NCBI GenBank assembly: GCA_950097015.1
Contig: CATNEN010000011.1
Coordinates: 1,984,001-2,048,000 of the forward strand
DNA from: Macrostomum hystrix
Lineage: Eukaryota; Animalia; Platyhelminthes
Reading direction: 5' to 3'
Length of the DNA stretch: 64,000 bases
Below, piece after piece: positions 3-61,389 of this stretch. Positions within the stretch are counted from its first letter, which is position 1. Each line of letters begins with the position of its first letter. The position numbers and the translations under genes are program-made. The notes below the pieces were generated by a model, which had not been told where the DNA came from, made no database searches, and was given only the letters and a program-made list of their open reading frames with translations.

Positions 3-1838
3 AGCAAGACAACTCTGCAGTGGATCACCAACACCGACAAGCTTCGCCAAGTTTTCGTTCAAAACCGCGTTAAGGAGATCCGGACTCTCACGTCAACGTC
101 CGAGTGGCGACATGTTCCCGGGGAACTGAACCCCGCCGACCTGCCATCTCGAGGCTGTCTTCCAGGGCAGCTACAGAAAAACAAGGTGTGGTTTAGTGGT
201 CCCGAATTTCTTCGATCAGGCATCTACCCAGCTTCGTCTGAAGATAAGCATTCGAGCGCAGTCGCGGAAGATCATAACTCTGCAGAAGCACTATCAACAG
301 TCGCTGAACAGCCCATGGAATCTAAGAACGTCGATCGTATCTCTTTAATCATTGACATCGGCAAGTTTTCGAACTATTCGAGAGAGTTACGCGTCCTAGC
401 ATGGGTACAAAGATTTGTCCGCAACCTACGGAGTGCTCGAGCTCAATCGTTGGTCAATAAATCAAGGACGGTGACCGCCGAAGAGTTGACTGATGCAGAA
501 GTCCTATTGGTAAGGTCAATTCAAAGGGAATCGTTTTCAAAGGAAATCGATCACATTCGGCGTAGCTCTGCTGCAACACATCTGAACAGGAACTTGAATC
601 TGTGGTTAGATGATAAGGGACTTTTGCGTTCACAAGGTCGTATCTCCGCACTGTCCTTCGAAGTTAATAATCCTATCTTAGTACCTCGCCACAGTCACTT
701 GGAGCAGCTCATTATTCGACAAGCTCATCAGTCCGTTGCTCACGGGGGAGTTGCCTCAACGCTTAGTAAAGTTCGTGAAAAATATTGGATTCTGAAGGGA
801 CGTCAACGAACTAAGCAAGAACTATCGAAGTGTGTGGTGTGTAGGAAGGTACAAGGACGCTCATACGTTGTACCTCAGATCTCTCAGCTACCTGAGTTTC
901 GCCTTTCCGACATCCGACCCTTTCAATCAGTCGGCGTGGACTACTGTGGTCCGATATTCTATCGGACGGGGGAGGATGGTTGTGACTCTCGGAAGGCGTA
1001 CATTCTACTTCTCACATGCTCATCGACTCGCGCAGTGCATCTGGAACTGCTTCCTGACATGACCGCATCGCAGTTCTTGAATGGATTACGTCGTTTTGTC
1101 AGTCGTCGCGGAATACCTTCCATCATCAGTGACAATGCCAAGACGTTCAAGGCTGCCGCGAATATTCTTGGAGCTAGCACCAGCTATAAAGTTCAATCAT
1201 TCTGTGCCAACAAGAAAATCTCTTGGGAGTTCATTCCGGAGAAGGCCCCGTGGTGGGGCGGATTTTGGGAAAGACTCGTTGGAATCGTTAAGGATGGATT
1301 GAAAAAGAGCATTGGCAAAGCTCTGCTAACATTCGATGAGCTATCAACTTCGGTTATCGAAATGGAATCTGTGGTGAACAGTCGACCACTTATGTATGTG
1401 TCGGCGGATGAGATCAACGACGTATTGACGCCTGCGCACTTTCTCTTCGGAACTCGGTTGACTCAGGAGCCAACTCTCTCGTCGAACCGTATCGCCAACG
1501 TCCTGCCATTGCCAGCTCGACTCAAACATCTCAGAAGAGCGTTGAATATTTTTTGGGATGTATGGAAAACGTCATATGTCACCGCCCTGCGTGAGAAAGC
1601 GCTCAAGTCGCATGGAGGAGGACCAGTTGCAAAACCCGGAGACGTCGTTTTGGTTCAGGGAGAACCGCATCAGCCAAGACTGCAATGGAAGATGGGTGTG
1701 GTAGAGTCTGTCCGTGAGGGTCGAGATGGTGCCGTTCGTTCCGCAGTTGTACGTCTGGCGAAGGAAAGGGGCTCTCGGGGGGCTGAGCGCATCAGACGGC
1801 CTGTCCAAGCTCTCATTCCTCTTGAATTGTGCATCTAA
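3..1838 (+). CDS. Bel/Pao pol polyprotein C-terminus: RNase H end, integrase (HHCC zinc finger and DDE core), DUF5641-like tail; ORF is open from the window edge
   Basis: Frame 3 reads SKTTLQWI...WRHVPGELNPADLPSRG, HQSVAH...CVVC, GVDYCGP, SDNAKTF, PWWGGFWERLV, WKMGVVESVREGRDGAVRS, RRPVQALIPLE; no stops or frameshifts. Confidence 0.95.
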   Translation, partial: SKTTLQWITNTDKLRQVFVQNRVKEIRTLTSTSEWRHVPGELNPADLPSRGCLPGQLQKNKVWFSGPEFLRSGIYPASSEDKHSSAVAEDHNSAEALSTVAEQPMESKNVDRISLIIDIGKFSNYSRELRVLAWVQRFVRNLRSARAQSLVNKSRTVTAEELTDAEVLLVRSIQRESFSKEIDHIRRSSAATHLNRNLNLWLDDKGLLRSQGRISALSFEVNNPILVPRHSHLEQLIIRQAHQSVAHGGVASTLSKVREKYWILKGRQRTKQELSKCVVCRKVQGRSYVVPQISQLPEFRLSDIRPFQSVGVDYCGPIFYRTGEDGCDSRKAYILLLTCSSTRAVHLELLPDMTASQFLNGLRRFVSRRGIPSIISDNAKTFKAAANILGASTSYKVQSFCANKKISWEFIPEKAPWWGGFWERLVGIVKDGLKKSIGKALLTFDELSTSVIEMESVVNSRPLMYVSADEINDVLTPAHFLFGTRLTQEPTLSSNRIANVLPLPARLKHLRRALNIFWDVWKTSYVTALREKALKSHGGGPVAKPGDVVLVQGEPHQPRLQWKMGVVESVREGRDGAVRSAVVRLAKERGSRGAERIRRPVQALIPLELCI

Positions 1839-11560: not shown

Positions 11561-11670
11561 TTTAGATCTTGGAGATCTAGAAAGAAGTCAAATTTAATAT
11601 CTAGAATCAAAATTATTTGTTCAATTTCTAATCGAAGTTTTAAATGGCACAACGAATTGGCTTTGCAGCG

Positions 11671-12507
11671 ATGAACCCCCTGACGCAGGTGCGAAATCAG
11701 CGCTTGTTGAATGAACGAGAGCTGAAGATGGGAACTGCCAATACCGGCTCCTCCTGGCACTCCATGTTCAAAGACTCGGCCTGGATCTACATCGGCGGCT
11801 TAGACTTCGACCTGACTGAGGGCGACGTCATCTGCGTGTTCTCCCAGTACGGCGAAGTTGTCAACATCAATCTGGTTCGAGATCAGGCCACCGGCAGAAG
11901 CAAGGGCTTCGCTTTCCTCTGCTACGAGGATCAGCGATCAACAGTTCTAGCCTGCGACAATCTGAATGGCGCCAAGGTTGTTGGCCGAACTCTCCGCGTC
12001 AACCATGTTGAAAGCTACAAAGTCAAGGAGCTGATCAAGCCGGACTTGGATCCCGTCAGGCAGCACCTCCGCGAGCAAGGCTGCGCGCCCGGTGCCGCCG
12101 CTGCTGTTGCTGAAGCCGTCTCGGTTGCCGCCGCGGTTGCCAAGGAAGCGGATTCGAGTCCGAAGCGATCTTCACAATCCCCACCGGCTTTGAATGCCAA
12201 AACTGACAGAATGCCCGTCAGGGTGAAACGCGAACGCATCGATCCCGGCTATCCTGACTATCGAAGTCGCCGTAGCCGTAGCCCTAATCAATCTGGAAAT
12301 CGGGCATTCGCTACTAGTTCAAATCGTCACCGAAGCCGTACCCGTAGCCGTAGCCCTAAGCGTACAGGAATACAACGAAGTCGTGATCAGGCCTCGCCGG
12401 CTAGACCTGTACATCGTAGCCGTAGCCGTAGCCGTAGTCCACGTGCCCACAGTAGCCGAAGTGATCATCGAGGCAGTGGAGGCGGCGGCCATCGTACTGT
12501 TCGATGA
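11671..12507 (+). CDS. RBMX2: RNA-binding motif protein X-linked 2 (IST3/Snu17, RES complex): RRM plus RS-rich tail, single coding exon
   Basis: MNPLTQVRNQRLLNERELKMG...SWHSMFKDSAWIYIGGLDFDLTEGDVICVFSQYGE...SKGFAFLCYEDQRSTVLACDNLNG; RSRSRS tail; an alternative in-frame ATG is at 11644. Confidence 0.95.
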   Translation: MNPLTQVRNQRLLNERELKMGTANTGSSWHSMFKDSAWIYIGGLDFDLTEGDVICVFSQYGEVVNINLVRDQATGRSKGFAFLCYEDQRSTVLACDNLNGAKVVGRTLRVNHVESYKVKELIKPDLDPVRQHLREQGCAPGAAAAVAEAVSVAAAVAKEADSSPKRSSQSPPALNAKTDRMPVRVKRERIDPGYPDYRSRRSRSPNQSGNRAFATSSNRHRSRTRSRSPKRTGIQRSRDQASPARPVHRSRSRSRSPRAHSSRSDHRGSGGGGHRTVR

Positions 12508-15266: not shown

Positions 15267-18200
15267 CTATAGCCGCAGATGCTCAGGCAGGCCTGGAACT
15301 TGACGACGCCAATTGCTCTTGTCGTCATTAGTCAGCTTGGCTACCGGGCGCAAGAACTCCTCAGTTTGTTTCCACTTTCTGGCCTTCCTTTCCACCTCCT
15401 GTTGGGTTGAGATGTTGCACAGTGCCATATGAATAGGAATCTTGGTTTTTACTGGGAGATTTCGAGAACATTGTGTCACAAATGGGAGATTTTCAGAAGA
15501 TTATCACAATGAGAGATTTAGAAAACATATTGTCACTATGGGAGTTTTTATAACAATGGGAGATTATAAGAACATAGGGCCACAATTGCGAGACAAATCT
15601 CTTGGAATATGAACTGAGTTTAGCTACCTGAGTCCCAGAACGTCGGAACGAAACATTCTCAACGGACAGCAGCGGAAAGTACAACTTGCCGTGGCGAACA
15701 ACTTTGGCCACTTTGATGCCGCAATTCTCGCACAACAGATCAACGCCAATCTGTTCCATGCCAGGCACCTTCTTGACCTCGCCGCCCTGCTGACCTCTCA
15801 GCCGACTGATGAACATGGTAGCATCCAAGACGATGCGGTGAATGTCTCCGATGAGTTTGAGTTTAGTTGAATGTGTCAGAAAATCCTGGCACTTGCCGCA
15901 CAGAATGTCGTGGTCACTGTCTGCTGGCCTGCCACCCCCGCCGACAGCTCCGTCGTCATCCTCACGATCGAGCAGATGAGCTTGATATTCAAGCATCTAA
16001 GGAAAATATGTTCCTTATTTTAAGATCCTCACACTAAATTCAAGATCACTAAATCCTCGTCCTAGAATCCTCATCCGGAATCTGAGATCCTAGAATCCCC
16101 TTCTGGAATCTGAGATCCCAGAATCCTCATCCGGAATCTGAGATCCTAGAATCCCCTTCTGGAATCTGAGATCCCAGAATCCTCATCCGGAATCTGAGAT
16201 CCCAGAATCCTCATCCGGAATCTGAGATCCCAGCTTACTCATCCGGAATCTGAGATCCTAGAATCCCCTTCTGGAATATGGGATCCTAGAATCCCCTTCT
16301 GGAATCTGAGATCCCAGAATCCTCATCCGGAATCTGAGATCCCAGCATCCTCATCCGGAATCTGAGATCCCAGCTTACTCATCCGGAATCTGAGATCCTA
16401 GAATCCCCTTCTGGAATATGGGATCCTAGAATCCTCATCCCGAACTGGAAATCCCATAATCCTTATTCCGAACTTGAGATCCCAAAATCCTCATACCGGA
16501 AACCTTATTCGGGATCTGGATCCCATTTCGGGCTAATAAAACAGCAGTACTCACTTTGACCTCCAAATCCTTCGGCTGCATTCCTGTAACATCCATCACA
16601 GCCCGCTTCATCATTTCGTCTCTCTGCTGATTGGTCCGCTCCTTCTCCCTTAGCCACTCCTGGGTTTCGGCCACGATCACGTGATATTCGCTGTCCTTGG
16701 CGCGACCCCTACCTTTGGACTGCACCATGGAGATTTCGTTGGTGAGGTGGCAGTAGCGAACCACCAAATTGCAGTCGGGAATGTCGAGGCCCTCCTCCGT
16801 GACGCTGGTGCAGGCGATCACATTGAAGCGGCCATCCTTGAAGTCCTTGAGTCTCGCCCGCTGTTCAGCGACGTTGGTGCCGCCAGCGGCCTCGCTGGAA
16901 GTGGCGCCTGTCACGTAGGTTGCGGCGAAAGACGAGTCTGGCATGGTCCCGGGCTCATTCAAATAATCGGCCAGCACCCTAGCGTAGAATTTCTGTTGCA
17001 CAAACACGATGGCCCGTGACTTGGTCCTGCCATTCTGGCCGGCTGGCCTGCAGAACTGCTTCTTCAAGATTTTCACGAGCTCTCCGAGTGGCGGACTCGA
17101 GTCCTGCGGGTTCGGATTGTCTCATCTAGCTCATCACCCGGTTCATCTCTCCCCTGTCCTGTCTTTCAACAGTCTATGTCTAATCTTTACTGTTTCTAGG
17201 GAGGTGAGTGATGAGACTGGGGAGAGATGAGACAGGGGAGAGATGAGATTCTGGAGGGATAAGACAGGGGAGAGATGAGACATGGGAGAGATGAGACTGG
17301 GGAGGGATAAGACAGGGGAGAGATGAGACAGGGGAGAGATGAGACTGGGGAGGGATAAGACAGGGGAGAGATGAGACTGGGGAGGGATGAGACTGGGGAG
17401 AGATGAGACAGGGGAGAGATGAGACTGGGAGGGATAAGACAGGGGAGAGATGAGACAGGGGAGAGATGAGACTGGGGAGGGATAAGACAGGGGAGAGATG
17501 AGACAGGGGAGAAATGAGACAGGGGAGAGATGAGACTGGGGAGGGATGAGACTGGGGAGAGATGAGACAGGGGAGAGATGAGACTGGGGAGGGATAAGAC
17601 AGGGGAGAGATGAGACAGGGGAGAGATGAGACAGGGGAGAGATGAGGCTGGGGAGAGATGAGACTGGGGAGGGATAAGACGGGAGAGATAAGACTGGGGA
17701 GAGATGAGACAGGGGAGAGATAAGACAGGGGAGAGATGAGACGGGAGAGATGAGACTGGGGAGAGATGAGACAGGGGAGAGATGAGAATGGGGAGGGATA
17801 AGACAGGGAAGAGATAAGACTGGGGACTCGTGGGGAGAGATGAGACAGGGGAGAGATAAGACTGGGGAGGGATGAGACAGGGGAGAGATGAGACTGGGAG
17901 GGATAAGACAGGGGAGAGATGAGACAGGGGAGAGATGAGACTGGGGAGGGATAAGACAGGGGAGAGATGAGACAGGGGAGAGATGAGACAGGGGAGAGAT
18001 GAGACTGGGGAGGGATGAGACTGGGGAGAGATGAGACAGGGGAGAGATGAGACTGGGGAGGGATAAGACAGGGGAGAGATGAGACAGGGGAGAGATGAGA
18101 CAGGGGAGAGATGAGGCTGGGGAGAGATGAGACTGGGGAGGGATAAGACGGGAGAGATAAGACTGGGGAGAGATGAGACAGGGGAGAGATAAGACAGGGG

Positions 18201-21200
18201 AGAGATGAGACGGGAGAGATGAGACTGGGGAGAGATGAGACAGGGGAGAGATGAGAATGGGGAGGGATAAGACAGGGAAGAGATAAGACTGGGGACTCGT
18301 GGGGAGAGATGAGACAGGGGAGAGATAAGACTGGGGAGGGATGAGACAGGGGAGAGATGAGACTGGGAGGGATAAGACAGGGGAGAGATGAGACAGGGGA
18401 GAGATGAGACTGGGGAGGGATAAGACAGGGGAGAGATGAGACAGGGGAGAGATGAGACAGGGGAGAGATGAGACTGGGGAGGGATGAGACTGGGGAGAGA
18501 TGAGACAGGGGAGAGATGAGCACAGGGTTCGTGGACCCTACATTAGCAGCTAGAATAGATACAAACAGTGTTTTAGTTTCTGCCTAAAACTAAAATACCC
18601 AATCCACAAGAATCCCTTGGGATAATTACACTTTCAAAGCCATCGAGTGCGCAATATTATAATGAATTACTTCTGCCTGGAACTGCGCACCAGCCTGCGC
18701 AGATCAATCCCATAATGTCTGAACCGATACCAATTAACAACTGCAACACTCACTTTGGCCTCGTTCGTGTCGCAATACGTAATCAGAGGCCCCATGAATT
18801 CATCCAAGCTCTCCCTCAGGATGTTCTCAGCTCTACTGGCTGGCTGTTTGGCTATCTCGTCCGGCGCCCTGAGCGCCTTCTCCAGGTAGTGCAGAGCATC
18901 AATTGAGCGAAAATACTGGCCAATCATAAGCGTCTCATTGTAGGTGCGCAGATAGCGACTGCAGGCCAATAGATTCTTTCTCGCGGACTCGTCAGCAACT
19001 TTGTGCACATTGTACTCAATGTCCGTGCAGAAATTGATGTAGTTGGGCACGCCTCTGGGCGGCGGCGACGCAGTCGGCAGGCCCTCGCCCTGGCCCTGCG
19101 GCAGGGCGTCGATGAAATCTCTCAGCAGTGCCTCGCCCCTGCGCATCAGTCCTTTAAGCAGTCGGGCGAATTTTTCCGAGCCCGGATTACCTGGCACAAT
19201 GTGAATCTCACAGTCCGGATTCGAGGTCACGAGGTCCAAGGATGCTTTGCAACGCTGAACAGTCACCGGATAGGGGCTGTCCAGGTTGGCGCACAGGCGG
19301 ATGAGGTGGTCGTTGGCCTGCTCTGGGCGGGACGCTCTGCCGGTGCCTTGACAGTGTTAAAGTGTTGTTTAAACGCGAACGCCATCTATAGGTACTGATT
19401 TTGTGCTGGTCCAATAACCCTGCACAAACTGGTCCAATAACCCTGCACAAACTGGTCCAATAACCCTGCACAAACTGGTCCAATAACCCTGCACAAACTG
19501 GTCCAATAAACCTGCACAAACTGGTCCAATAACCCTGCACAAACTGGTCCAATAAACCTGCACAAACTGGTCCAACAACCCTGCACAAACTGGTCCAACA
19601 ACCCTGCACAAACTGGTCCAACAACCCTGCACAAACTGGTCCAATAAACCTGCACAAACTGGTCCAACACCCCTGCACAAACTGGTCCAATAAACCTGCA
19701 CAAACTGGTCCAACAACCCTGCACAAACTGGTCCAACAACCCTGCACAAACTGGTCCAATAAACCTGCACAAACTGGTCCAACACCCCTGCACAAACTGG
19801 TCCAACAACCCTGCACAAACTGGTCCAACAACCCTGCACAAACGGGTCCAACAACCCTGCACAAACTGGTCCAATAAACCTGCACAAACTGGTCCAACAA
19901 CCCTGCACAAACGGGTCCAACAACCCTGCACAAACTGGTCCAATAAACCTGCACAAACTGGTCCAACAACCCTGCACAAACTGGTCCAATAACCCTGCAC
20001 AAACTGGTCCAACAACCCTGCACAAACTGGTCCAATAACCCTGCACAAACTGGTCCAATAACCCTGCACAAACTGGTCCAAAAAACCTGCACAAACTGGT
20101 CCAACAACCCTGCAAAAACTGGTCCAACAACCCTGCACAAACTGGTCCAATAAACCTGCACAAACTGGTCCAACAACCCTGCACAAACTGGTCCAATAAC
20201 CCTGCACAAACTGGTCCAACAACCCTGCACAAACTGGTCCAACAACCCTGCACAAACTGGTCCAACAACCCTGCACAAACTGGTCCAACAACCCTGCACA
20301 AACTGGTCCAACAACCCTGCACAAACTGGTCCAACAACCCTGCACAAACTGGTCCAACAACCCTGCACAAACTGGTCCAACAACCCTGCACAAACGGGTC
20401 CAACAACCCTGCACAAACTGGTCCAATAAACCTGCACAAACTGGTCCAACAACCCTGCACAAACTGGTCCAACAACCCTGCACAAACTGGTCCAACAACC
20501 CTGCACAAACTGGTCCAACAACCCTGCACAAACTGGTCCAACAACCCTGCACAAACTGGTCCAACAACCCTGCACAAACTGGTCCAACAACCCTGCACAA
20601 ACTGGTCCAATAACCCTGCACAAACTGGTCCAATAACCCTGCACAAACTGGTCCAAAAAACCTGCACAAACTGGTCCAATAACCCTGCACAAACTGGTCC
20701 AATAAACCTGCACAAACTGGTCCAACAACCCCGCACAAACTGGTCCAACAACCCTGCACAAACTGGTCCAACAACCCTGCACAAACTGGTCCAATAACCC
20801 TGCACAAACTGGTCCAACAACCCTGCACAAACTGGTCCAACAACCCTGCACAAACTGGTCCAACAACCCTGCACAAACTGGTCCAACAACCCTGCACAAA
20901 CGGGTCCAACAACCCTGCACAAACTGGTCCAACAACCCTGCACAAACTGGTCCAACAACCCTGCACAAACTGGTCCAACAACCCTGCACAAACTGGTCCA
21001 ACAACCCTGCACAAACTGGTCCAACAACCCTGCACAAACTGGTCCAACAACCCTGCACAAACTGGTCCAACAACCCTGCACAAACTGGTCCAACAACCCT
21101 GCACAAACTGGTCCAACAACCCTGCACAAACGGGTCCAACAACCCTGCACAAACTGGTCCAATAAACCTGCACAAACTGGTCCAACAACCCTGCACAAAC

Positions 21201-24200
21201 TGGTCCAACAACCCTGCACAAACTGGTCCAACAACCCTGCACAAACTGGTCCAATAACCCTGCACAAACTGGTCCAACAACCCTGCACAAACTGGTCCAA
21301 CAACCCTGCACAAACTGGTCCAACAACCCTGCACAAACTGGTCCAACAACCCTGCACAAACGGGTCCAACAACCCTGCACAAACTGGTCCAATAAACCTG
21401 CACAAACTGGTCCAACAACCCTGCACAAACTGGTCCAATAACCCTGCACAAACTGGTCCAATAAACCTGCACAAACTGGTCCAACAACCCTGCACAAACT
21501 GGTCCAATAACCCTGCACAAACTGGTCCAACAACCCTGCACAAACTGGTCCAATAACCCTGCACAAACTGGTCCAATAACCCTGCACAAACTAGTCCAAT
21601 CTGAAGTCACCTTCAAGGCCAATCGGCCTTCCTATTCTCGATCCTTCTGAGCTCACCTGGACTAGCCGTGAGTCCAAGGATCTGTGGCAGTTTGATTCCT
21701 GGCTGGCCAGTCTCGCTTAGGTCCCTTCTGAGCCGGAAGTAGTGCAGCATCACCTCGCTGCTCGGATGCCCGCCCTGGCAGTTGTGGCACTCGTCGAATA
21801 TGAGCAGACGAAATGCAGCCAATTCGCGGCCGCCAAAACTTTCGATCTCGCGGTTGAGCGCATTGACAAGAATCTGTGTGCTCAGTACAAGCACTGAGTG
21901 CCTTTTAATAGCCTGGGCAAAGGGCAGCCGATCTTTGGTGTCTGAGCCGCCGTGAATCTTGCAGATTTTATTGCACCACCTGGCCGGCAGGTGGGCTCGA
22001 AACTCTTCGTACTGCTGCTGAACCAGCTGCGATGTTGACGCCAGGAAGGCCACCTATAATATTTGAAGGTTGGTGAATTTTAGTTTGACAAACCTGACAA
22101 GTCCTCTCATGGCTATAAATCCTGAACTCAGTTACCTTAGCATCCGGTTCCTTCTCCAGCACCTGCAGAGTCACATAGACTGCCACCAGAGTCTTGCCAG
22201 AGCCAGTCGGCGCGATTACAATCGAGTTGCGGCCAGCCAACGCCGGCTCGGCTAACTCCAGTTGATAGTCCCGCAGTTGACGATCGTTGCTAAGCAATCC
22301 AACGTTGCTAGGCAACTGAGCCGGCAGCTGATGATTGGTAAATCGGTGCGTTTCCGGTTCGAATTCGATGGCGTTGCGGTCGAACCAGTCATTGGAATAG
22401 CGGGACACTGCGCTCTGAGCTGCGTGAAACTTCTCGTCTGACTTTACGTTGTCAAGCTGCTGCTGCAGAGATGTCACCTCTGTTGATGCACCATTTTGGG
22501 AGAAATTGTCGAGTAATGATCGTTGAGCAAGTACCTCCCATTTCTCAAGCCTTCTCATGCCTCCATCCCAAAACAATCCCTCTCCCACTACCAGTCTCAT
22601 ACTCTTCACTTCCCAAACTATTTTTCTCCCCTTCACAATCTCCTCTCCCCTTCACAACCTCACTTCTCTCCCCTTCACAACCTCCTTCTCTCCCCTTCAC
22701 AACCTCCTTCTCTCCCATTCAAAACCTCCTTCTCTCCCCTTCACAACCTCCGTCTCTCTCCCTCACCATCTCCTTCTCTCCCCTTCACAACCTTCTCTCC
22801 CCTTCACAACCTCACTTCTCTCCCCTTCACAACCTCCTTCTCTCCCCTTCACAACCTTCTCTCCCCTTCACAATCTCCTTCTCTCCCCTTCACAACCTCC
22901 TTATCTCCCCTTCACAATCTCCTTCTCTCCCCTTCACAACCTTCTCTCCCCTTCACAATCTCCTTCTCTTCCCTTCACAATCTCCTTCTCTCCCCTTCAC
23001 AACCTTCTCTCCCCTTCACAACCTCCTTCTCTCCCCTTCACAATCTCCTTCTCTGCCCTTCACAATCTCCTTCTCTGCCCTTCACAATCTCTTCTGAAAG
23101 TCACTAGTTCATGACTCACTAGGCCCACACGCGTCAATAAACGGCGCAATGACGGTCAACAATTCGACAACCTCCTCCTCGTTGGCAGCGCTAATGGCGG
23201 CCATGACGAGCAGCTCGAACCAGTCATCTGGCCTTTCCTGGATGAGCCGGCAAATGGTCTCTGCGGTGATGTTAACCAGGAATTCCATTGCATGACTTAA
23301 TGCTGTGCAGTGCAGGAAAATTGGCTGGGGCATATTAGCATGAACTAGATAATGATTAAGGAACAAAATGAAGGGGTCGGGTAGAACAGGTGGCAGGGAA
23401 CCTGGTGGCACAGGTAACACAGGTAACACAGGGGAATGGATAGCCATCGCAGGGAACCTTGTGGCACAGGTAACACAGGTAACATATGGAGAATGGATAG
23501 CCATCGCAGGTGACCGGTGGCACAGGTAACACAGGGAGAATGGATAGCCATCGCAGGTGACCGGTGGCACAGGTAACACAGGGAGAATGGATAGCCATCG
23601 CAGGGAACCTGGTGGCACAGGTAACACAGGTAACACAGGGGGAATGGATAGCCATCGCAGGGGACTGATGGCACAGGTAACACAGGTAACACAGGGGGAA
23701 TGGATAGCCATCGCAGTGGACTGGTGGCACAGGTAACACAGGGAGAATGGATAGCCATCGCAGGGGACCGGTGGCACAGGTAACACAGGTAGCACAGGGA
23801 GAATGGATAGCCATCGCAGGGAACCTTGTGGCACAGGTAACACAGGGAGAATGGATAGCCATCGCAGGGGACCGGTGGCACAGGTAACACAGGTAGCACA
23901 GGGAGAATGGATAGCCATCGCAGGGGACCGGTGGCACAGGTAAAACAGGTAACACAGGTAGCACAGGGAGAATGGATAGCCATCGCAGGGGACCGGTGGC
24001 GCAGGTGGCACAGGTAACACAGGGAGAATGGATAGCCATCGCAGGGGACCGGTGGCGCAGGTGGCACAGGTAACACAGGGAGAATGGATAGCCATCGCAG
24101 GGGACCGGTGGCACAGGTAGCACAGGTAGCACAGGGAGAATGGATAGCCATCGCAGGGGACCGGTGGCACAGGTAGCACAGGTAGCACAGGGAGAATGGA

Positions 24201-39734: not shown

Positions 39735-41740
39735 TTTAAGTTGGGATTTTTATTCTTTGGGATTCAGAGTGATTGGGATCTGAGAATGGGGATTAAGGTA
39801 AGTTGGGATTTCAATCCTTTGGGATTCAGAGTAATTGGGATCGGAGAATGGGGATTGAGGTAAGTTGGGATTTCAATCAATAAGGATTCAGAGTAACTGG
39901 GATCGGAGAATCCTCGAGGTAAGTACTAAGGTAAGTTGGGATTTCAATCATTAAGCTGTAAGTTTGGATGGCTTCATTCAAGCTGTAAGTTTGGAATGGG
40001 GATTGAGGTAAGTTGGGATTTTATTTCTTTGGGATTCAGAGAAATTGGGATCGGAGAATGGGGATTGAGGTAAGTTGGGATTTCAATCCTTTGGGATTCA
40101 GAGTAATTGGGATCAGAGAATGGTGATTGAGGTAAGTTGGGATTTCAATCATTAAGGATTCAGAGTAATTGGGATCGGAGAATGGGGATTGAGGTAAGTT
40201 GGGATTTCAATCCTTTGGGATTCAGAGTAACTGGGATCGGAGAATGGGGATTGAAGTAAGTTGGGATTTCAATCAATAAGGATTCAGAGTAACTGGGATC
40301 GGAGAATAGGGATTAAGGTAAGTTGGGATTTCAATCATTAAGCTGTAAGTTTGTATGGCTTCATTCAAGCTGTAAGTTTGGAATGGGATTGAGGTAAGTT
40401 GGGATTTTATTTGTTTGGGGTTCAGAGTAAATGGGATCTGAGAATAGGGATTGAGGTAAGTTGGGATTTCAATCATTAAGGATTCAGAGTAATTGGGATC
40501 GGAGAATGGGGATTGAGGTAAGTTGGGATTTCAATCCTTTGGGATTCAGAGTAATTGGGATCGGAGAATGGGGATTGAGGTAAGTTGGGATTTTATTTCT
40601 TTGGGATTCAGAGTAATTGGGATCGGAGAATGGGGATTGAGGTAAGTTGGGATTTCAATCCTTTGGGATTCAGAGTAATTGGGATCAGAGAATGGGGATT
40701 GAGGTAAGTTGGGATTTCAATCATTAAGGATTCAGAGTAATTGGGATCGGAGAATGGGGATTGAGGTAAGTTGGGATTTCAATCCTTTGGTATTCAGAGT
40801 AACTGGGATCGGAGAATGGGGATTGAAGTAAGTTGGGATTTCAATCAATAAGGATTCAGAGTAACTGGGATCGGAGAATAGGGATTAAGGTAAGTTGGGA
40901 TTTAAATCATTAAGCTGTAAGTTTGTATGGCTTCATTCAAGCTGTAAGTTTGGAATGGGATTGAGGTAAGTTGGGATTTTATTTGTTTGGGGTTCAGAGT
41001 AAATGGGATCTGAGAATAGGGATTAAGGTAAGTTGGGATTTCAATCATTAAGGATTCAGAGTAATTGGGATCGGAGAATGGGGATTGAGGTAAGTTGGGA
41101 TTTTATTTCTTTGGGATTCAGAGAAATTGGGATCGGAGAATGGGGATTGAGGTAAGTTGGGATTTCAATCCTTTGGGATTCAGAGTAATTGGGATCGGAG
41201 AATGGGGATTGAGGTAAGTTGGGATTTCAATCATTAAGGATTCAGAGTAATTGGGATCGGAGAATGGGGATTGAGGTAAGTTGGGATTTTATTTCTTTGG
41301 GATTCAGAGAAATTGGGATCGGAGAATGGGGATTGAGGTAAGTTGGGATTTCAATCCTTTGGGATTCAGAGTAATTGGGATCGGAGAATGGGGATTGAGG
41401 TAAGTTGGGATTTCAATCCTTTGGGATTCAGAGTAATTGGGATCGGAGAATGGGGATTGAGGTAAGTTGGGATTTCAATCATTAAGGATTCAGAGTAATT
41501 GGGATCGGAGAATGGGGATTGAGGTAAGTTGGGATTTTATTTCTTTGGGATTCAGAGAAATTGGGATCGGAGAATGGGGATTGAGGTAAGTTGGGATTTC
41601 AATCCTTTGGGATTCAGAGTAATTGGGATCGGAGAATGGGGATTGAGGTAAGTTGGGATTTTTATTCTTTGGGATTCAGAGTAATTGGGATCTGAGAATG
41701 GGGATTGAGGAAAGCTTGGAGTTAAATCATTTGAGATTCA
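39735..41740. repeat. 62-bp G-rich minisatellite built from four GGGAT subunits, ~30 copies
   Basis: Unit GGGGATTGAGGTAAGTTGGGATTTCAATCCTTTGGGATTCAGAGTAATTGGGATCGGAGAAT. Confidence 0.96.
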
Positions 41741-42225
41741 GAATAAATGGGATCGGAGTATTATAATTTCTAAAATCCCTATACAAGCGTAGGCTGGACC
41801 CATTCCGAGTCCTCAGCAGAATATCCGAAGCCTTGTGAAGTGGAATTTACTTTAATTTAACCAGTTTGAATAATTCCCTGACATTGATCGGTTCCTCAAA
41901 CTTAAATTTTCCTAGTCAAACCTATTGGACCCAGATCGCCATATTTGAAAATGTTTGCTATAAGACTTCAACCTACTTGAAAATGTTTCACTTCAATGAG
42001 AAAGAAGAGAAAATCGATCTTTCAAAAGCAGCTTGACGATTTCGGAGAATTCAATTCGAACTGTCACAATGCAATTGCCAGAGGTTGTCAACTCGTTTGC
42101 CCACGCATTCTTCAGTAAGGACAGATTTTTGTTTAACTTTTTCCTGTATATATACCATCGAGGCAAAAGATTTCTCGGACATTCAGTTTCTAGGTCCAAA
42201 GATTTCAGTCAAGACCAAAATCAAC

Positions 42226-44346
42226 ATGAAGCTGCTAAATCTAGTTGGCTTTCTGCTTTTCCTATCGTCAGTTTGCGGTAGGTAGTTCAGACAGTTATTA
42301 TCGATGCTTTTCCTTCTAGACTGTTTAAATTGAGTTCTGTCGTTTGTTTCAGATGAGTCCGATGGAAGAGCAGTTGGACAACCAGCTGCGGCACTTAAAA
42401 GCCTTCCTTTCGGAGGCCGAAACGGAGGAGGACCCGGCGGATTTGGTGGCAGAATCGGAGGAAGACCCGGTGGATTTGGCGGCAGAATCGCAGGAAGACC
42501 CGGCGGATTTGGTGGAAGAAACGGAGGATTTGCTGGAAGAAACGGAGGAGGACCCGGCGGATTTGGTGGTCCGTCTTTCGGCGGAAGAAGGAAAATTGGA
42601 TTAAGGAACAAAATCGGAGGAAGACCCGGCGGATTTGGTGGAAGACCCGGCGGATTTGGTGGAAGACCCGGCGGATTTGGTGGAAGAAACGGAGGATTTG
42701 GTGGAAGACCCGGCGGATTTGGTGGAAGACCCGGCGGATTTGGTGGAAGACCCGGCGGATTTGGTGGAAGAAACGGAGGATTTGCTGGAAGAAACGGAGG
42801 AGGACCCGGCAGATTTGGTGGTCCGTCTTTCGGCGGAAGAAGGAAAATTGGATTAAGGAACAAAATCGGAGGAAGACCCGGCGGATTTGGTGGAAGACCC
42901 GGCGGATTTGGTGGAAGACCCGGCGGATTTGGTGGAAGACCCGGCGGATTTGGTGGAAGAAACGGAGGATTTGGTGGAAGACCCGGCGGATTTGGTGGAA
43001 GACCCGGCGGATTTGGTGGAAGACCCGGCGGATTTGGTGGAAGAAACGGAGGATTTGCTGGAAGAAACGGAGGAGGACCCGGCAGATTTGGTGGTCCGTC
43101 TTTCGGCGGAAGAAGGAAAATTGGATTAAGGAACAAAATCGGAGGAAGACCCGGCGGATTTGGTGGAAGACCCGGCGGATTTGGTGGAAGACCCGGCGGA
43201 TTTGGTGGAAGACCCGGCGGATTTGGTGGAAGAAACGGAGGATTTGGTGGAAGACCCGGCGGATTTGGTGGAAGACCCGGCGGATTTGGTGGAAGACCCG
43301 GCGGATTTGGTGGAAGAAACGGAGGATTTGCTGGAAGAAACGGAGGAGGACCCGGCAGATTTGGTGGTCCGTCTTTCGGCGGAAGAAGGAAAATTGGATT
43401 AAGGAACAAAATCGGAGGAAGACCCGGCGGATTTGGTGGAAGACCCGGCGGATTTGGTGGAAGACCCGGCGGATTTGGTGGAAGACCCGGCGGGTTTTCT
43501 GGAAGAGGCGGAAGAGGACCCGGCGGATTTGCTGGAAGAAACGGCGGATTTGGTGGAAGACCCGGCGGATTTGGTGGAAGACCCGGCGGATTTGGTGGAA
43601 GACCCGGCGGATTTGGTGGAAGACCCGGCGGATTTGGTGGAAGACCCGGCGGGTTTTCTGGAAGAGGCGGAAGAGGACCCGGCGGATTTGCTGGAAGAAA
43701 CGGCGGATTTGGTGGAAGACCCGGCGGATTTGGTGGAAGACCCGGCGGATTTGGTGGAAGACCCGGCGGATTTGGTGGAAGACCCGGCGGATTTGGTGGA
43801 AGACCCGGCGGGTTTTCTGGAAGAGGCGGAAGAGGACCCGGCGGATTTGCTGGAAGAAACGGCGGATTTGGTGGAAGACCCGGCGGATTTGGTGGAAGAC
43901 CCGGCGGATTTGGTGGAAGACCCGGCGGATTTGGTGGAAGACCCGGCGGATTTGGTGGAAGACCCGGCGGGTTTTCTGGAAGAGGCGGAAGAGGACCCGG
44001 CGGATTTGCTGGAAGAAACGGCGGATTTGGTGGAAGACCCGGCGGATTTGGTGGAAGACCCGGCGGATTTGGTGGAAGACCCGGCGGATTTGGTGGAAGA
44101 CCCGGCGGATTTGGTGGAAGACCCGGCGGGTTTTCTGGAAGAGGCGGAAGAGGACCCGGCGGATTTGCTGGAAGAAACGGCGGATTTGGTGGAAGACCCG
44201 GCGGATTTGGTGGAAGACCCGGCGGATTTGGTGGAAGACCCGGCGGATTTGGTGGAAGACCCGGCGGATTTGCTGGAAGAAACGGAGGAGGATCCAACGG
44301 ATTCAGACACAAAAACTATGTTAGTCAACGCGCATTCAGTGGCTAA
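42226..44346 (+). CDS. Secreted Gly/Arg/Phe-rich repeat protein, 681 aa, (GGRPGGF)n. Exons: 42226-42277, 42353-44346
   Basis: Signal peptide [17 protein letters not shown], phase-1 intron GTAGGT...TTTCAG, 2-kb uninterrupted frame ending TAA; TATA-like sequence ~42147; AATAAA at 44436. Confidence 0.88.
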
Positions 44347-44559
44347 AACTGACCATTGATAAGTTATTTGGCTTTTCAAAAAGCGGAACTGAAATTATAT
44401 TTTACGGTTATCAGGGGGTTCTATCTAATATGAAAAATAAAAAAAGTATTTGAAACGTATTTCATAACAATTTCTAACTTTTTATGGCTTGTTTTGTTTC
44501 AGTCCAAAGTTTTCACAGAGAAGAGACATGTTGACATATTTGTCTTCCTTGGTAAGGAC

Positions 44560-46060
44560 AGTCACTCCGTAGATAGTTATATTTCTCACCGGAAGACAAT
44601 TTAGATTTTCACTCCGTAGATAGTTAGGATCGTCACTCCGTAGACAGTTAGGATCGCCACTCCGTAGACAGTTAGGATCGTCACTCCGTAGACAGTTAGG
44701 ATCGTCACTCCATAGACAGTTAGGATCGTCTAGATAGTTAGGATCGTCACTCCGTAGACAGTTAGGATCGTCTAGATAGTTAGGATCGTCACTCCGTAGA
44801 TAGTTAGGATCGTCACTCCGTAGACAGTTAGGATCGTCACTCCGTAGACAGTTAGGATCGTCACTCCGTAGACAGTTAGGATCGTCACTCCGTAGATAGT
44901 TAGGATCGTCACTCCGTAGACAGTTAGGATCGTCACTCCGTAGACAGTTAGGATCGTCACTCCGTTGACAGTTAGGATCGTCACTCCGTAGACAGTTAGG
45001 ATCGTCACTCCGTAGACAGTTAGGATCGTCACTCCGTAGACAGTTAGGATCGTCACTCCGTTGACAGTTAGGATCGTCACTCCGTAGACAGTTAGGATCG
45101 TCACTCCGTTGACAGTTAGGATCGTCACTCCGTAGACAGTTAGGATCGTCACTCCGTAGACAGTTAGGATCGTCACTCCGCAGACAGTTAGGATCGTCAC
45201 TCCGCAGACAGTTAGGATCGTCACTCCGCAGACAGTTAGGATCGTCACTCAATAGATTGTTACAATTGTCACTCCGAGGACAGTTACGATTGTCACTCCG
45301 AGGACAGTTACGATTGTCACTCCGAGGACAGTTAGGATTGTTACTCCGAAGATAGTTAGAACTGTCACTCAATAGATAGTTAGGATTGTCACTCAGTAGA
45401 AAATTACGATTGTCACTCCGAGGACAGTTACGATTGTCACTCCGAGGACAGATAAGATTAGTACTCCGAAGACAGTTACTATTGTCACTCCGAGGACAGT
45501 TACTATTGTCACTCCGAGGACAGTTACTATTGTCACTCCGAGGACAGTTACTAGTCACTCCGAGGACAGTTACTATTGTCACTCCGAGGACAGTTACTAT
45601 TGTCACTCCGAGGACAGTTACTATTGTCACTCCGAGGACAGTTACTATTGTCACTCCGAGGACAGTTACTATTGTCACTCCGAGGACAGTTACTATTGTC
45701 ACTCCGAGGACAGTTACTATTGTCACTCCGAGGACAGTTACTATTGTCACTCCGAGGACAGTTACTATTGTCACTCCGAGGACAGTTACTATTGTCACTC
45801 CGAGGACAGTTACTATTGTCACTCCGAGGACAGTTACTATTGTCACTCCGAGGACAGTTACTATTGTCACTCCGAGGACAGTTACTATTGTCACTCCGAG
45901 GACAGTTACTATTGTCACTCCGAGGACAGCTACTATTGTCACTCCGAGGACAGTTACTATTGTCACTCCGAGGACAGTTACTATTGTCACTCCGAGGACA
46001 GTTACTATTGTCACTCCGAGGACAGTTACTATTGTCACTCCGAGGACAGTATTTTCACTC
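44560..46060. repeat. 24-bp minisatellite with two variant domains (TCACTCCGTAGACAGTTAGGATCG on the left, TCACTCCGAGGACAGTTACTATTG on the right)
   Basis: Direct inspection; 2-nt deletion at ~45553; probably non-coding. Confidence 0.9.
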
Positions 46061-46594
46061 CGAAGACAGAAACACAGGGAGACTGAAGCATATTAGAGTA
46101 ATCACTCAAAATATAATTATAACTCTGCAAATTAATGCTCAACTTAGTTAAACAGACCGTACAGGTTTCTATAGAACAATAATTTCTAAGAGCAAAGGCG
46201 GTAGAAAACTTTTTCAGTTCCATAGGGACTTTTTCTAACCACAGACAAGTACCGAGAGTAGTCTAAAATATAATCGTATGTCTAAGATCTGACAGAACCA
46301 TTCTCACACCCTTAGTGGATGGCAGCTGGCTGATCGGTGACTTCTCCAGTGGCTCTTGAAAAAAAGACAGTTCCATGGACTAGCGAGTTTTTCTCTCGAG
46401 AAATAATGAGAAGGAACAGGAAAGTTCCAGTTAGGAACCAGTCAGATCTTCACGGCGGTGCCAAGTTGAAGCCTATTAAAGTTTGACTGCGGCAGAAAAT
46501 TATACTTGTTGATCATTGAAGAGCACTTCTCAGTCTCGGCACTTCGTTAAAGAAATTCATTGCGAATTGATAATTCTGCTGTCAATCAACAATC

Positions 46595-47423
46595 ATGAAA
46601 TTGCTGCATCTGGCCGTGATAATTCTACTGCTCTGCGTCTTCTTTGGTAAATTCAATTTGAAGCTTTGCTTCAGTGTCATTCGTCTTCTGTCTCACCCCG
46701 TCTATCTCTCTCCTAGCCTGTCTCAACTTTTCTCTCTTACCCTGTCGCCTTGTCTATCACATCTCAACCTGTCTATCTTATCTCACCCGGTCTGTCCACC
46801 TCTCTCTCTGTTTATCGATATTTCGACGTCGATCTCTCTTAACCCGCCAGTCTATCTCACCCTGTCTATCTCACCCTGTCTATCTCACCCAGTCTATCTC
46901 AACCTGTCTATCTCACCCTATCTATCTCACCCTGTCTATCTCAACCTGTCTATCTCAACCTGTCTGTCTCACCCTGTCTACCTCACCCTGTCTATCTCAC
47001 CCTGTCTATCTCACCCTGTCTATCTCACCCTGTCTACCTCACCCTGTCTATCTCACCCTATCTACTTCACCCTGTCTATCTCACCTTGTCTTTCTCACCC
47101 TGTCTCCTGTCTCCCCTATCCACCCCGCATTTCCAGGCGAATCCGCCGCAAAACGCAGAGGCGGCAGCTCCCATAGCCGCGGCAAGTCAAGGCCCCACCA
47201 GTCGAAATCATGGAGCTCCGGCAGCGTCGGCAAGTCCCACGGGTCCAGCCGAGGTTCATCAGGATCAGGAGGCAAGGCTCACCACTCGGGCAAGGCTCAC
47301 GGCAAGACAAACAAGCACTCAGGCTTGAGCAAGAGGCACAATAGGCAGAGGCACTCGAGTCATGGATCTGGCACCTACCACTGGGGCAGGAGGTATAGTC
47401 ACTACGGAAGACACAGCGGTTGA
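46595..47423 (+). CDS. Secreted His/Gly/Ser/Arg/Lys-rich cationic peptide precursor, 112 aa. Exons: 46595-46646, 47137-47423
   Basis: Signal MKLLHLAVIILLLCVFF, phase-1 intron GTAAAT...TTCCAG, then GESAAKRRGGSSHSRGKS...YSHYGRHSG*; AATAAA at 47492. Confidence 0.85.
46850..47105. repeat. 14-bp minisatellite (CTGTCTATCTCACC)n in the intron of the His-rich peptide gene
   Basis: Direct inspection. Confidence 0.93.
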
Positions 47424-58339: not shown

Positions 58340-59978
58340 GTTCCAGGCTGGATTAATGAGGCTGACTGTCCTGCAATGCAAATTAGAGTTCCGTATACTC
58401 CGTCACCAAACTGACACATCAATTTCTATGGAAAGTAGGTCCAGCTGAAGGTACTGGTCAGACACGCTTGGTTTCGCTTTTTTCCTTTAGTCTCAAACCT
58501 AAGTAGGCATCTGCGTGATTTGGGTTCCTTTAATCTGTGTTGGGTAGATATTTGCTTAAATTCTGAGTACAGGTACATTTTTTAGTGCGGCCTCGTATTA
58601 TTAGGTCCCTGCAGCTCAAACTCTTTTGCGCCAAGGTCAAATATGGTTAAAAGGTTTTCCATCTCTAGCTTCCCATATGATGATGGAAAAGGAGACTGCG
58701 GATGAGGCGCTGAAGCTGAGAGACACAGGAACAGAAATCGCGCGCCAGATCAATAAAATATTTATGAGACTCGGCTGGGCAGCAACCGAGGACCGAAATT
58801 CTGCTTCAGCCCTCCGGCCTGACACAGACTCTCAGGTGACCGACACGACCATCATCGCTGTAAATCTCGGGATATGGGAGAAATATACCCTCACACACAC
58901 ACCAGTGGGATATGGTCTGGTAGGAAAAGCCTTGGTGACCGAGGGCAGACAACACTCTCTTGAGACTTCCCCCAGCGGTTCCGCCACCCCAAGCCCCACT
59001 TGACAACAACGGAGTAGTTTGTTTCTGGGCCTAGGTGCAGAAGATGGGACTTGTTTATTGAATCCCCTGACTGCAGCATCCAGTCCTGCCCTAACTCTCC
59101 CTGCTTCTCCAGGTCTACATGCGAGTACAAGAGAAATAAGAAAGAACACGGACCAAAGCCTCTGAAAACCTAGCTGGATGTGATTTCTAAGTTTCTTGGC
59201 GGGGATGGGACTTTGACTCTGGCTTGGATTATTGATCCGAACTAACTAGCTCACGTGCATGCTCTCCGCTGCTACAAGCAATTATTTCATTGGAAGACAG
59301 GTCCTAGATTGAAATCATGGATATTAACTTCTATTTTTAGTGTCAAATGCGTTGAAAGTTGGAAAAACAGATCGGATGGCCGAATGAAACAGAGAATGGG
59401 AATATAGTGCAATTTACAAACTCTATCAAGTTGTTTTAGCTCTTAAACGATCCATTTTTACGTCAATCAAAACTTTATAATGAAAAACAAAAACTAAATA
59501 AAAAAATATGTAAACAATAGTTTCGATTCTCACCTTTGTATCACACAATGAAGCTGAACAGTTAATTATTCTGTAGATCAATCAAGCTAAAAAAATAGAT
59601 TTTTTAATGTTGATTCCGTAGCTGGCAGCAATGACAGGATCAGGGAGTTCAGGGGATCAAGGAAAAGATGGTGCAGTTTTGTGAGAGTGTTAGGGGGATT
59701 GGAGCAGCTCTTCCCTTATGCAATGGGGTTTGGCGCGGCTTGGGAGAGGTGAGGTGAGGCTGAGCGGAGCTGGAGATGACGGAGACCGAGCTAGCTGCTC
59801 AGCGAATTGCAACTCACCGGGCGCCACGGGGTCCAACCACTCCTGATCGTTGGGCCGTCTGAAGCCAGTCTCACAATTTCCCTGCCAACTGACGGCGCCA
59901 AGAAAACGTCCTACGCCTGTGACCGCTGAGATTCCTGCTGCCTTTCTAACTCGCTCGCTCCTAGATCTTCCTTTCATC

Positions 59979-61389
59979 ATGGCTTCGTCATCCGCCGCTA
60001 ACAATGGCAAGCCAACAATTCTCTGGGCCGTGCCTCGCAGCATCAGCACGGCCTTCTTTCGCGCTATGGAGAACCATTCGAGAACTCGAGTCTACCTGGA
60101 GCCCTACTCAAAGGCTTATTATTTTGGACCGGAGAGAGTTAGCGATCGGTACGCTGATCAGCCAGTCCAGCCTGACTGCACCTTCCACAGCATCAAGAGC
60201 ACCCTGGAGGCTGCGGCTGCCGAAAACCCTGACAAGCTAGTCTTTGTCAAGGACATGGCCTACTACCTGTACGGTGGCAGGTATCGGCCTGAGGATTTGC
60301 TGCCGAGAGGCTGTCGACACACCTTTCTGGTGCGCGATCCGCACAAGACGGTGAAGTCGCTCTACAAGATGTCAATCAATACGCAGCTCACAGGTTTGTG
60401 CGAGATAAAATGTCTATTAGTCTAATATTTTTTGAAAATGTTGAATGCTACTTAAGCCAGTAGAGTAGAGCGGAAATATCAATGATAAATGTTTTACACT
60501 CTCTAACCAAAAGGCTGGGACAGTTTCGACGAACAGGAAATCGGCTTCAAGGAGCTCTGGTCGCTCTACGAACTGCTTCGAGCTGTTGACGATGAGCCGC
60601 CGATTGTCATTGACGCCGACGATTTGCTTCAACAGCCAGGTTTGTGCGACATTGATGTGCAATTGCTAATCAAACTTGTAATTAATATCTTACAGCTGCC
60701 CTAATTAGACCACATTTGCTGCCTACAGCACGGCCGCAGCTATTGCGCAAGTCTGAAGACTGCGTACGGCTGTTCAGTCCATGGACTGAGGGGACTCCGC
60801 GCCCAACCCTCATTTGCCCAGCTAATTCTGGTACCAATTTAACCGCCAGGTGAAATGAAGCAAATTTTCCAGTCAAGTCGAGATTCGAACCCCCGACTTT
60901 CAAGTCATTTGTCCGACGCTCTAACCACTAGACTACAACCTCCTTGTAGAGATCGTAGAAAAAATCGTGTTTTAAGGCGAAGGCACACGAAGGCACACGC
61001 TCACACGGGCGTGTACATGTTTGCTGGCTTTCTTATTGTCAGGCAGTGTACAACTCTCACAGTTACACTCTCACAATTCACACAAATTCCAATCGCGGCT
61101 CATTGCAGAGGACTACTTCAAAGCCTACTGCAGCCGCATCGGCCTTCAGTACGAGCCCAGCATGCTGAAGTGGGACTCCGGCCAGGAATCGGTCGCCGCC
61201 ACTGACGAGTGGGCCGGCTGGTTCGAGGGCGTCCTCGGGACGACGTCGTTTGTTAAGCCGCTGGCCAGGAAGCGGCAGCCGTCCATTGATCTGCCCGACT
61301 ATGTGATGCTGAGCATCGAAAGAAACGTGCCCTATTATCACAGCTTCCTGGCTGTCAAGACTCGCCTTGGCGACATTGCCGAGGACTGA
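59979..61389 (+). CDS. P-loop sulfotransferase-like protein, 273 aa. Exons: 59979-60393, 60514-60639, 61109-61389
   Basis: LWAVPRSISTAFFRAM, EPY, VFVKDMAY, HTFLVRDPHKTVKS, PIVIDADDL, YCSRIGL.Y..SMLKW, GWFEGVLGTTSF; two phase-1 introns join in frame (822 nt). Confidence 0.9.
60770..60942 (-). mobile_element. Second tRNA-headed Deu/Nin-like SINE copy (degenerate), followed by a SINE A fragment at ~61005-61070, in sulfotransferase intron 2
   Basis: Minus strand GGTTGTAGTCTAGTGGTTAGAGCG...GGGGTTCGAATCTCG then TTGCTTCATTTCACCTGGCGGTTAAATTGGTACC. Confidence 0.65.

Follow-up and report, generated by a model that had tools for sequence, protein, structure and literature searches.

The closest described systems come from several animal phyla. 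The Sp185/333 (SpTransformer) immune genes of sea urchins have two exons, the first of which, of 51/54 nucleotides (nt), encodes only a leader; their products have a Gly-rich region containing the peptide GGFGGRPGG, and the genes lie in repeat-flanked clusters (PMC3342357). The insect elastomer resilin has GGRPGG as a core motif (PMC7794388). In the flatworm Macrostomum lignano, the glue contains an extremely cationic protein with Lys/Arg repeats, Mlig-ap1, and heparin blocks its function (PMC6410801). Gly-rich disordered chains can be driven into phase separation by their Arg and Phe residues; the disordered RG/FG-rich protein Ddx4 phase-separates, and F-to-A or R-to-K substitution abolishes this (PMC5847340). 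The subject of this report is a gene of Macrostomum hystrix that recalls each of these systems in some respect. It lies on the + strand of a 64-kb stretch of contig CATNEN010000011.1, the whole of which was analysed and is referred to here as the window. The gene has two exons, and its coding sequence of 2046 nt specifies a protein of 681 amino acids (aa) composed largely of the heptad GGRPGGF.

There is little doubt that this is a genuine, expressed and lineage-restricted two-exon gene, the product of which is predicted to be secreted. Its coordinates, together with those of the other features of the window, are collected in Table 1.

Gene structure and evidence of transcription

A search of public sequencing runs returned five, from two studies, each holding 12-29% of the words sampled. 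The contigs of four of these were aligned over 41760-42640 (881 letters); that the runs are RNA is itself a guess. The exact 42277/42353 joint is present in one contig each from runs X1 and X2 (study P1) and X5 (study P2). These contigs start 24-28 nt before the ATG, at 42198-42202, reach 42276/7, skip the 75 nt of the intron and enter exon 2, whilst contig depth is zero across the intron and throughout 41760-42197. A DNA sample would cover both the intron and the upstream flank, and the simplest reading is therefore a spliced mRNA transcribed from the + strand. A spliced mRNA exists, and its first ATG opens the sole through-running frame. It is this joint in RNA, and not the open frame, that raises the gene above chance. 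The earlier note on this DNA, made from the letters alone, had staked its proposal on a spliced 42277/42353 transcript, and one has been found in three runs from two studies.

A further contig of 244 nt, from run X3 with another organism label, joins a linker, one heptad block and the C-terminal tail (42493-42639 + 44290-44320). As it carries the tail sequence, the 3' end of the coding region must be transcribed too. Either the repeats were collapsed when the contig was assembled, or it represents an allele or orthologue of the gene that is much shorter. No indels relative to the genome are reported in the RNA contigs over the aligned region, and the base differences number four: those at 42471 and 42558 are synonymous third-position changes, that at 42601 replaces Leu with Ile, and that at 42559 merely matches the sequence of modules 2-4 and reflects cross-placement.

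The intron has the donor G/GTAGGT at 42278 and the acceptor TTTCAG/ ending at 42352. A TATA-like element lies ~45-55 nt 5' of the first transcribed bases seen, a distance given with the proviso that assembled contigs cannot fix the true 5' end of the mRNA. There is no upstream ATG in 42150-42225, and the mRNA thus has no ATG before 42226. Nor does exon 2 contain any in-frame ATG, GTG or TTG, which explains why the list of open reading frames (ORFs) for this region shows just antisense and off-frame ORFs. The proposal that the true frame is hidden, its ATG being supplied by a 52-nt signal exon while the ORF track holds nothing but shadows, agrees with the coordinates and with that list. Two of the frames in competition with it were considered and rejected. 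The antisense ORF of 709 aa (PPNPPGL) fails because the intron has GT..AG on the + strand only, and the acidic +2 frame (EDPADLV) fails because the first ATG of the mRNA does not reach it and stops interrupt it.

Repeat organisation

The protein contains ~56 heptad units, 49 of them GGRPGGF and 7 GGRNGGF, and these are arranged hierarchically, as had been described from the sequence: a heptad, four modules of 84-91 aa with linkers, and five modules of 53 aa. Four identical linkers, exact 42-nt matches spaced 252, 273 and 273 nt apart, terminate modules of 88 (mature), 84, 91 and 91 aa. In the C-terminal block, five 10-residue motifs start at 43492, 43651, 43810, 43969 and 44128, an exact period of 159 nt (53 aa). 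Modules 3 and 4 show no differences in 273 nt; similarly, the first four of the 159-nt modules have no nucleotide differences among them, and the fifth copy has 4. Since the modules are identical at the nucleotide level, they are the outcome of very recent amplification or homogenisation, and carry no signal of selection or of long-term conservation.

It had also been claimed that the frame is preserved here over 2 kb, unlike that of neighbouring minisatellites. This contrast fails. Within this array, 42415-44280 is free of stops in four of six frames. Of the 14 other large arrays that the window contains, nine likewise have one or more frames open throughout, even where the period is 16, 22, 23 or 56 nt.

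The only dibasic sites in the protein are four GRRK sequences (GRRKIG), located in the linkers at the exact ends of the modules; there are none in the last 310 aa, and the furin-type motif RX[KR]R is absent from the whole protein. Cleavage in a linker would place Lys at P1 or P1'. Thus, of the suggestion that the linkers are basic cleavage sites, the position of the four dibasic sites at module ends stands, whilst the lack of RX[KR]R leaves processing possible and not strongly indicated.

Composition and predicted properties of the protein

The 681 residues comprise 333 Gly, 98 Arg, 81 Phe, 66 Pro and 25 Asn. Acidic residues are confined to D18, E19 and D21, in line with the observation that none occurs past about position 21. 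The mature chain of 664 aa (~61.6 kDa) has a net charge of ~+105 and consists of 50.0% Gly, 14.8% Arg, 11.9% Phe and 9.9% Pro, with Lys at 1.5%. The mature chain has no Cys, one Tyr and 10 Lys, and neither an N-glycosylation sequon nor an RGD motif occurs in it; the whole protein has one His. Arg and Phe each recur every seven residues, and there are 60 Pro-Gly sites and 50 Arg-Pro dipeptides, the latter accounting for half of the Arg. Arg-Pro bonds are not normally cut by trypsin-like enzymes or prohormone convertases. As half of the Arg residues precede Pro, most of the chain should resist trypsin-type proteases.

The N-terminus has the form of a signal peptide: MK is followed by a hydrophobic core of 11-12 residues, which scores 2.1-2.6 in a 9-residue Kyte-Doolittle window, and then by S-V-C. 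The last of these is compatible with the small -3/-1 rule at the putative cleavage site, and the signal peptide itself is predicted from hydropathy. From this 17-residue signal peptide it follows that the product is predicted to enter the secretory pathway, to be either secreted or stored in granules. For the first 174 mature residues, AlphaFold2 gave a mean predicted local distance difference test score (pLDDT) of 50.7 and no secondary structure, a result that is weak in that the prediction was made from a single sequence. It is consistent with the mature chain being an intrinsically disordered polycation. The mature chain, which lacks Cys and has a single Tyr and just 10 Lys, cannot be cured covalently by disulfide, dityrosine or 3,4-dihydroxyphenylalanine (DOPA) cross-links.

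Search for relatives

Pfam returned no family at E-values up to 1. A word-indexed search of 5.8 billion clusters with the whole of exon 2 yielded only low-complexity matches to bacterial proteins of the IF2/BamB type, and no matches were obtained when the query was the stretch of 89 residues that opens the mature chain. An exhaustive phmmer search of 1.84 billion representatives gave 281 matches, the best at 3.6e-30 and none below 1e-30; none of the 281 covers the unique N-terminus or a linker. The matches inspected are unrelated snail, nematode, bacterial and protist proteins with runs of GGxPGG(F/Y/M), such as an ECE-like protein of Biomphalaria, a scramblase-like protein of Aphelenchoides and a myxobacterial protein. 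The ESM Atlas contained no usable match. Together, Pfam, the two large protein searches and the ESM Atlas bear out the earlier view that no named family can be recognised. The term orphan is used here in respect of the collections searched.

In the literature, the peptides GGRPGGF, RPGGFGG and PGGFGGR were not found in papers, and GGFGGRP was found only in a review of Sp185/333 (PMC3342357). Literature searches on Macrostomum glycine-rich proteins, on Macrostomum antimicrobial peptides and on rhabdite histochemistry gave no result for this gene. Among known kinds of protein, it falls with the secreted glycine-rich low-complexity repeat proteins, and it belongs to no known family. The chemistry of the protein is unusual for that kind in combining Arg with Phe, in having no curing residues and in its net charge of ~+105.

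A reversible condensate and the alternatives

The reading tentatively favoured is that the protein is a disordered secreted polycation that would make a reversible condensate, forming a phase of a glue, mucus or cement. It is preferred because of the precedents set by Ddx4, Mlig-ap1 and resilin. In such a scheme, the Arg and Phe found every seven residues would serve as interaction points, with Gly and the Pro-Gly turns as spacers between them. The protein would be stored in a gland granule, its charge probably being balanced by a polyanion, for instance acidic or sulfated glycans. Once it was discharged into sea water, contacts between Arg and Phe and between Arg and the polyanion would give a reversible, non-covalent condensate, and this might constitute the cohesive or viscoelastic phase of the secretion. 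The four GRRK linkers could be extra polyanion-binding patches or the sole sites at which the chain can be cut.

Several considerations weigh against this reading. Secretion is itself a prediction, the polyanionic partner is hypothetical, and a chain with a charge of +105 may simply stay soluble. Phe is reportedly a weaker interaction point than Tyr, according to mutational studies of the FUS family. Conservation gives no sign that the protein matters, as no homologues were found in the collections searched and the modules are identical in nucleotide sequence. Finally, in its regularly placed dibasic linkers and its C-terminal Gly the protein resembles a processed peptide precursor more than it does a structural protein.

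This last point leads to the main rival, an unlikely one, according to which the product is a host-defence polyprotein. Cleavage at the four GRRK linkers would release five Gly-rich cationic peptides, four of them 84-91 aa in length and the fifth of 310 aa. In the manner of other glycine-rich antimicrobial peptides, these would bind and damage microbial envelopes, possibly after C-terminal amidation from the final Gly. A signal peptide, extreme positive charge, dibasic sites restricted to the exact ends of modules and a chain ending in Gly all suit such a precursor, as does the presence 2.2 kb downstream of a small, cationic, His-rich gene for a putative secreted protein, likewise with a 52-nt phase-1 leader exon; the gene design is moreover like that of the sea-urchin Sp185/333 immune genes (PMC3342357). 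However, the linkers lack RX[KR]R, the last 310 aa are devoid of any cleavage site and there is no amphipathic segment. The products (84-91 and 310 aa) would also be far longer than most Gly-rich antimicrobial peptides, which counts against a defence role. A short, Arg-flanked repeat unit ending in Gly-Gly, a possible amide donor, has a parallel in multi-copy neuropeptide precursors, in which case ~50 peptides of the PGGFG-amide type would be released by cutting after each single Arg. This is barely credible, and was rejected on account of the Arg-Pro bonds: in 50 units Arg precedes Pro, a bond not normally cut, and there are neither dibasic sites between the units nor acidic spacers. A collagen-like structure was rejected too, as the period is seven, with Gly at positions 1, 2, 5 and 6 of GGRPGGF, and not Gly at every third residue.

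It is rather improbable that the locus is a young transcribed coding minisatellite of little or no function, formed when a 21-nt array expanded beside a pre-existing leader exon. The setting lends itself to this explanation in that 42% of the window consists of large tandem arrays, most of them with frames that are open by construction; the nucleotide identity of the modules, and the lack of a homologue among 1.84 billion representatives or 5.8 billion clusters, point the same way. Yet assembled copies of the transcript come from three runs, in two studies and under three organism labels; the TATA, splice sites, polyadenylation signal and signal peptide of the gene are all clean; and the array is framed by non-repeat N- and C-termini and by structured linkers. 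The two clear allelic differences among the contigs are synonymous, but two sites are too few to carry weight. It is quite improbable that the protein is secreted for reproduction, whether as a prostate or seminal-fluid protein or as an egg cement; the chain would then bind to sperm, to tissue of the partner or to the egg surface, and not to the substrate. Orphan status, rapid expansion of the repeat and a signal peptide would fit this reading, and transcripts limited to the prostate of Macrostomum are said to be largely without homologues in published screens; the sequence, however, does not separate such a product from that of a somatic gland.

A broader version of the condensate reading can be put forward as a doubtful suggestion. 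The protein might do outside the cell what the RGG/FG condensate formers do within it, as a secreted, cross-link-free polymer of Arg, Phe and Gly that gives a switchable, reversible glue or mucus phase whose state is set by polyanions and salt. It would perhaps act with the His-rich neighbour, the two belonging to a cassette family of 'one leader, unrelated cationic payloads'.

Genomic surroundings

Large tandem arrays with periods of 14-62 nt account for ~42% of the window. As nine of the 14 have a fully open frame, the long ORFs in the window are mostly repeat artefacts, for example those of 804 aa and 735 aa at 19208-21622. The gene itself is tightly flanked, by a 62-nt minisatellite at 39994-41758 that ends 440 nt before the TATA and by a 24-nt minisatellite at 44561-46069, the start of which is 215 nt beyond the stop. 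In being flanked by repeats in this way, the gene recalls the Sp185/333 clusters.

The second putative two-exon secreted gene, predicted from sequence, occupies 46595-47423 on the + strand. Its protein has no Pfam match. Like the GGRPGGF protein, it begins with x-Glu-Ser after the signal peptide and ends with Ser-Gly-stop. A signal exon conserved between the two genes was considered and found weak: they have in common length, phase and MKLLxL, with otherwise ~56% DNA identity. A pattern built from both leader exons matches no more often than chance.

Among the remaining ORFs, the exact protein encoded by the 7TM-like ORF is not on record in the gene-position collection. The sulfotransferase-like ORF would become relevant only if a sulfated glycan were the partner of the polycation.

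Table 1. Positions of the features of the GGRPGGF gene, of the neighbouring gene and of other ORFs in the window
Feature	Position	Strand	Remarks
TATA-like element TATATATA	42147-42154	+	Sole TATA[AT]A in 42000-42225; putative promoter
5' untranslated region, minimum extent	42198-42225	+	Contigs start at 42198 (X5) and 42202 (X1/X2)
Exon 1, coding part, 52 nt	42226-42277	+	ATG, 17-residue signal peptide, first base of codon 18; phase-1 intron
Intron, 75 nt, GT..AG	42278-42352	+	Skipped exactly in X1, X2 and X5 contigs; zero depth inside
Exon 2, coding part, 1994 nt including TAA stop	42353-44346	+	Contigs cover 42353-42640; X3 contig reaches C-terminal tail sequence
Unique N-terminus and degenerate first module, ending in linker 1	42353-42615	+	From sequence
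Linker 1, 14 aa, 42 nt	42574-42615	+	Identical copies at 42826-42867, 43099-43140 and 43372-43413
Modules 2-4 of heptads (84, 91, 91 aa)	42616-43413	+	Modules 3 and 4 nucleotide-identical
C-terminal heptad block, no linker	43414-44289	+	Five 10-residue motifs
Unique C-terminal tail, 18 residues and stop	44290-44346	+	Chain ends in Gly; tail is the loose end of the X3 contig
AATAAA, candidate polyadenylation signal	44436-44441	+	90 nt 3' of stop
Neighbour, exon 1, 52 nt, phase 1	46595-46646	+	Encodes MKLLHLAVIILLLCVFF
Neighbour, intron, 490 nt	between 46646 and 47137	+	Filled with a 14-nt minisatellite
Neighbour, exon 2	47137-47423	+	95-residue Ser/Gly/His/Lys/Arg-rich cationic chain
Retroelement integrase ORF	186-1838	+	Integrase_H2C2, rve, DUF5641
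RRM protein gene	11644-12507		
RIG-I-like gene	15496-15996	-	C-terminal domain
Single-exon ORF, 385 aa	37586-38743	-	Weak match to rhodopsin-family seven-transmembrane (7TM) proteins (E 3.5e-4, below cut-off)
ORF with weak sulfotransferase-domain match	59850-60425	+	PF19798, E 0.003, below curated cut-off; may be chance

Significance

Provided that the protein is produced and forms a material, it would represent a minimal natural design, with one kind of heptad, no cross-linking residues and a net charge of ~+105, that could serve reversible underwater cohesion or condensation. One module of 84-91 aa can be tested in recombinant form, and the design is relevant to the model of temporary adhesion in Macrostomum, which already relies on a polycation. 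Should the product instead be a defence polyprotein, it would add a Gly/Arg/Phe class to the very poorly known immune effectors of flatworms. Having no internal start codon and lying in surroundings that are 42% minisatellite, the gene is one that ORF-based or repeat-masked annotation would miss. The large protein collections searched hold nothing like the GGRPGGF protein. Secreted low-complexity proteins that are repetitive and lack known relatives are, however, common among invertebrates, and the finding is thus of moderate interest.

Comparison with known systems

The likeness to Sp185/333 is one of gene architecture. Both genes have two exons, the leader-only exon being of 52 nt here and 51/54 nt there; in both, a repeat-built, disordered mature protein rich in Gly and Arg is encoded by exon 2, and simple repeats surround the genes. 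GGFGGRPGG occurs in both proteins, although this match, to a published Sp185/333 peptide, spans nine residues of low complexity and is not evidence of homology. In contrast to Sp185/333, the chain has no RGD, a single His and no His-rich region, the His-rich cationic sequence being that of the separate neighbouring gene. The repeats of the M. hystrix protein are far more regular and numerous, and the two systems come from different phyla.

Insect resilin, with its repeats GGRPSDSYGAPGGGN and GYSGGRPGGQDLG, is likewise secreted, disordered and rich in Gly and Pro, with a GGRPGG/GGRPS core and Pro-Gly turns between the interaction residues (PMC7794388). Resilin differs in having one Tyr per repeat for di- and trityrosine cross-links, a chitin-binding (R&R) domain between the repeat regions and acidic residues, whereas the protein described here has one Tyr in 681 residues, no Pfam domain and a net charge of ~+105. 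Mlig-ap1 comes from the same genus and is also a secreted orphan with extremely cationic repeats, whose action depends on charge and is blocked by heparin (PMC6410801). Unlike the present protein, Mlig-ap1 is >5,000 aa long, is rich in Lys/Arg and has C-type lectin, vWD, TIL and EGF domains. The M. hystrix protein is Gly/Arg/Phe-rich with no Pfam domain, has 1.5% Lys in its mature chain and shows no sequence match in the collections searched beyond unrelated low-complexity proteins.

Gly-rich cationic antimicrobial peptides and their precursors, such as the nematode NLP peptides and caenacins, the spider acanthoscurrins and ctenidins, and insect apidaecin and Baramicin, combine a signal peptide with Gly-rich, cationic, aromatic repeats. 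Their multi-peptide precursors have basic cleavage sites between repeated modules, the position in which the candidate sites of the present protein lie. Unlike the M. hystrix protein, they are usually <200 aa, use Tyr, His or Trp and not Phe, and have clear RR/KR or RXRR sites in their precursors; homology to glycine-rich antimicrobial peptides was not found. The cement protein Pc-1 of the sandcastle worm and the mussel foot proteins offer a likeness of another sort, being secreted, basic proteins of short Gly-rich repeats, with one aromatic residue per repeat, that undergo coacervation. They differ from the Phe/Arg protein described here in that they cure through Tyr/DOPA and Lys. As no curing chemistry is available to the M. 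hystrix protein, any material that it formed would be reversible.

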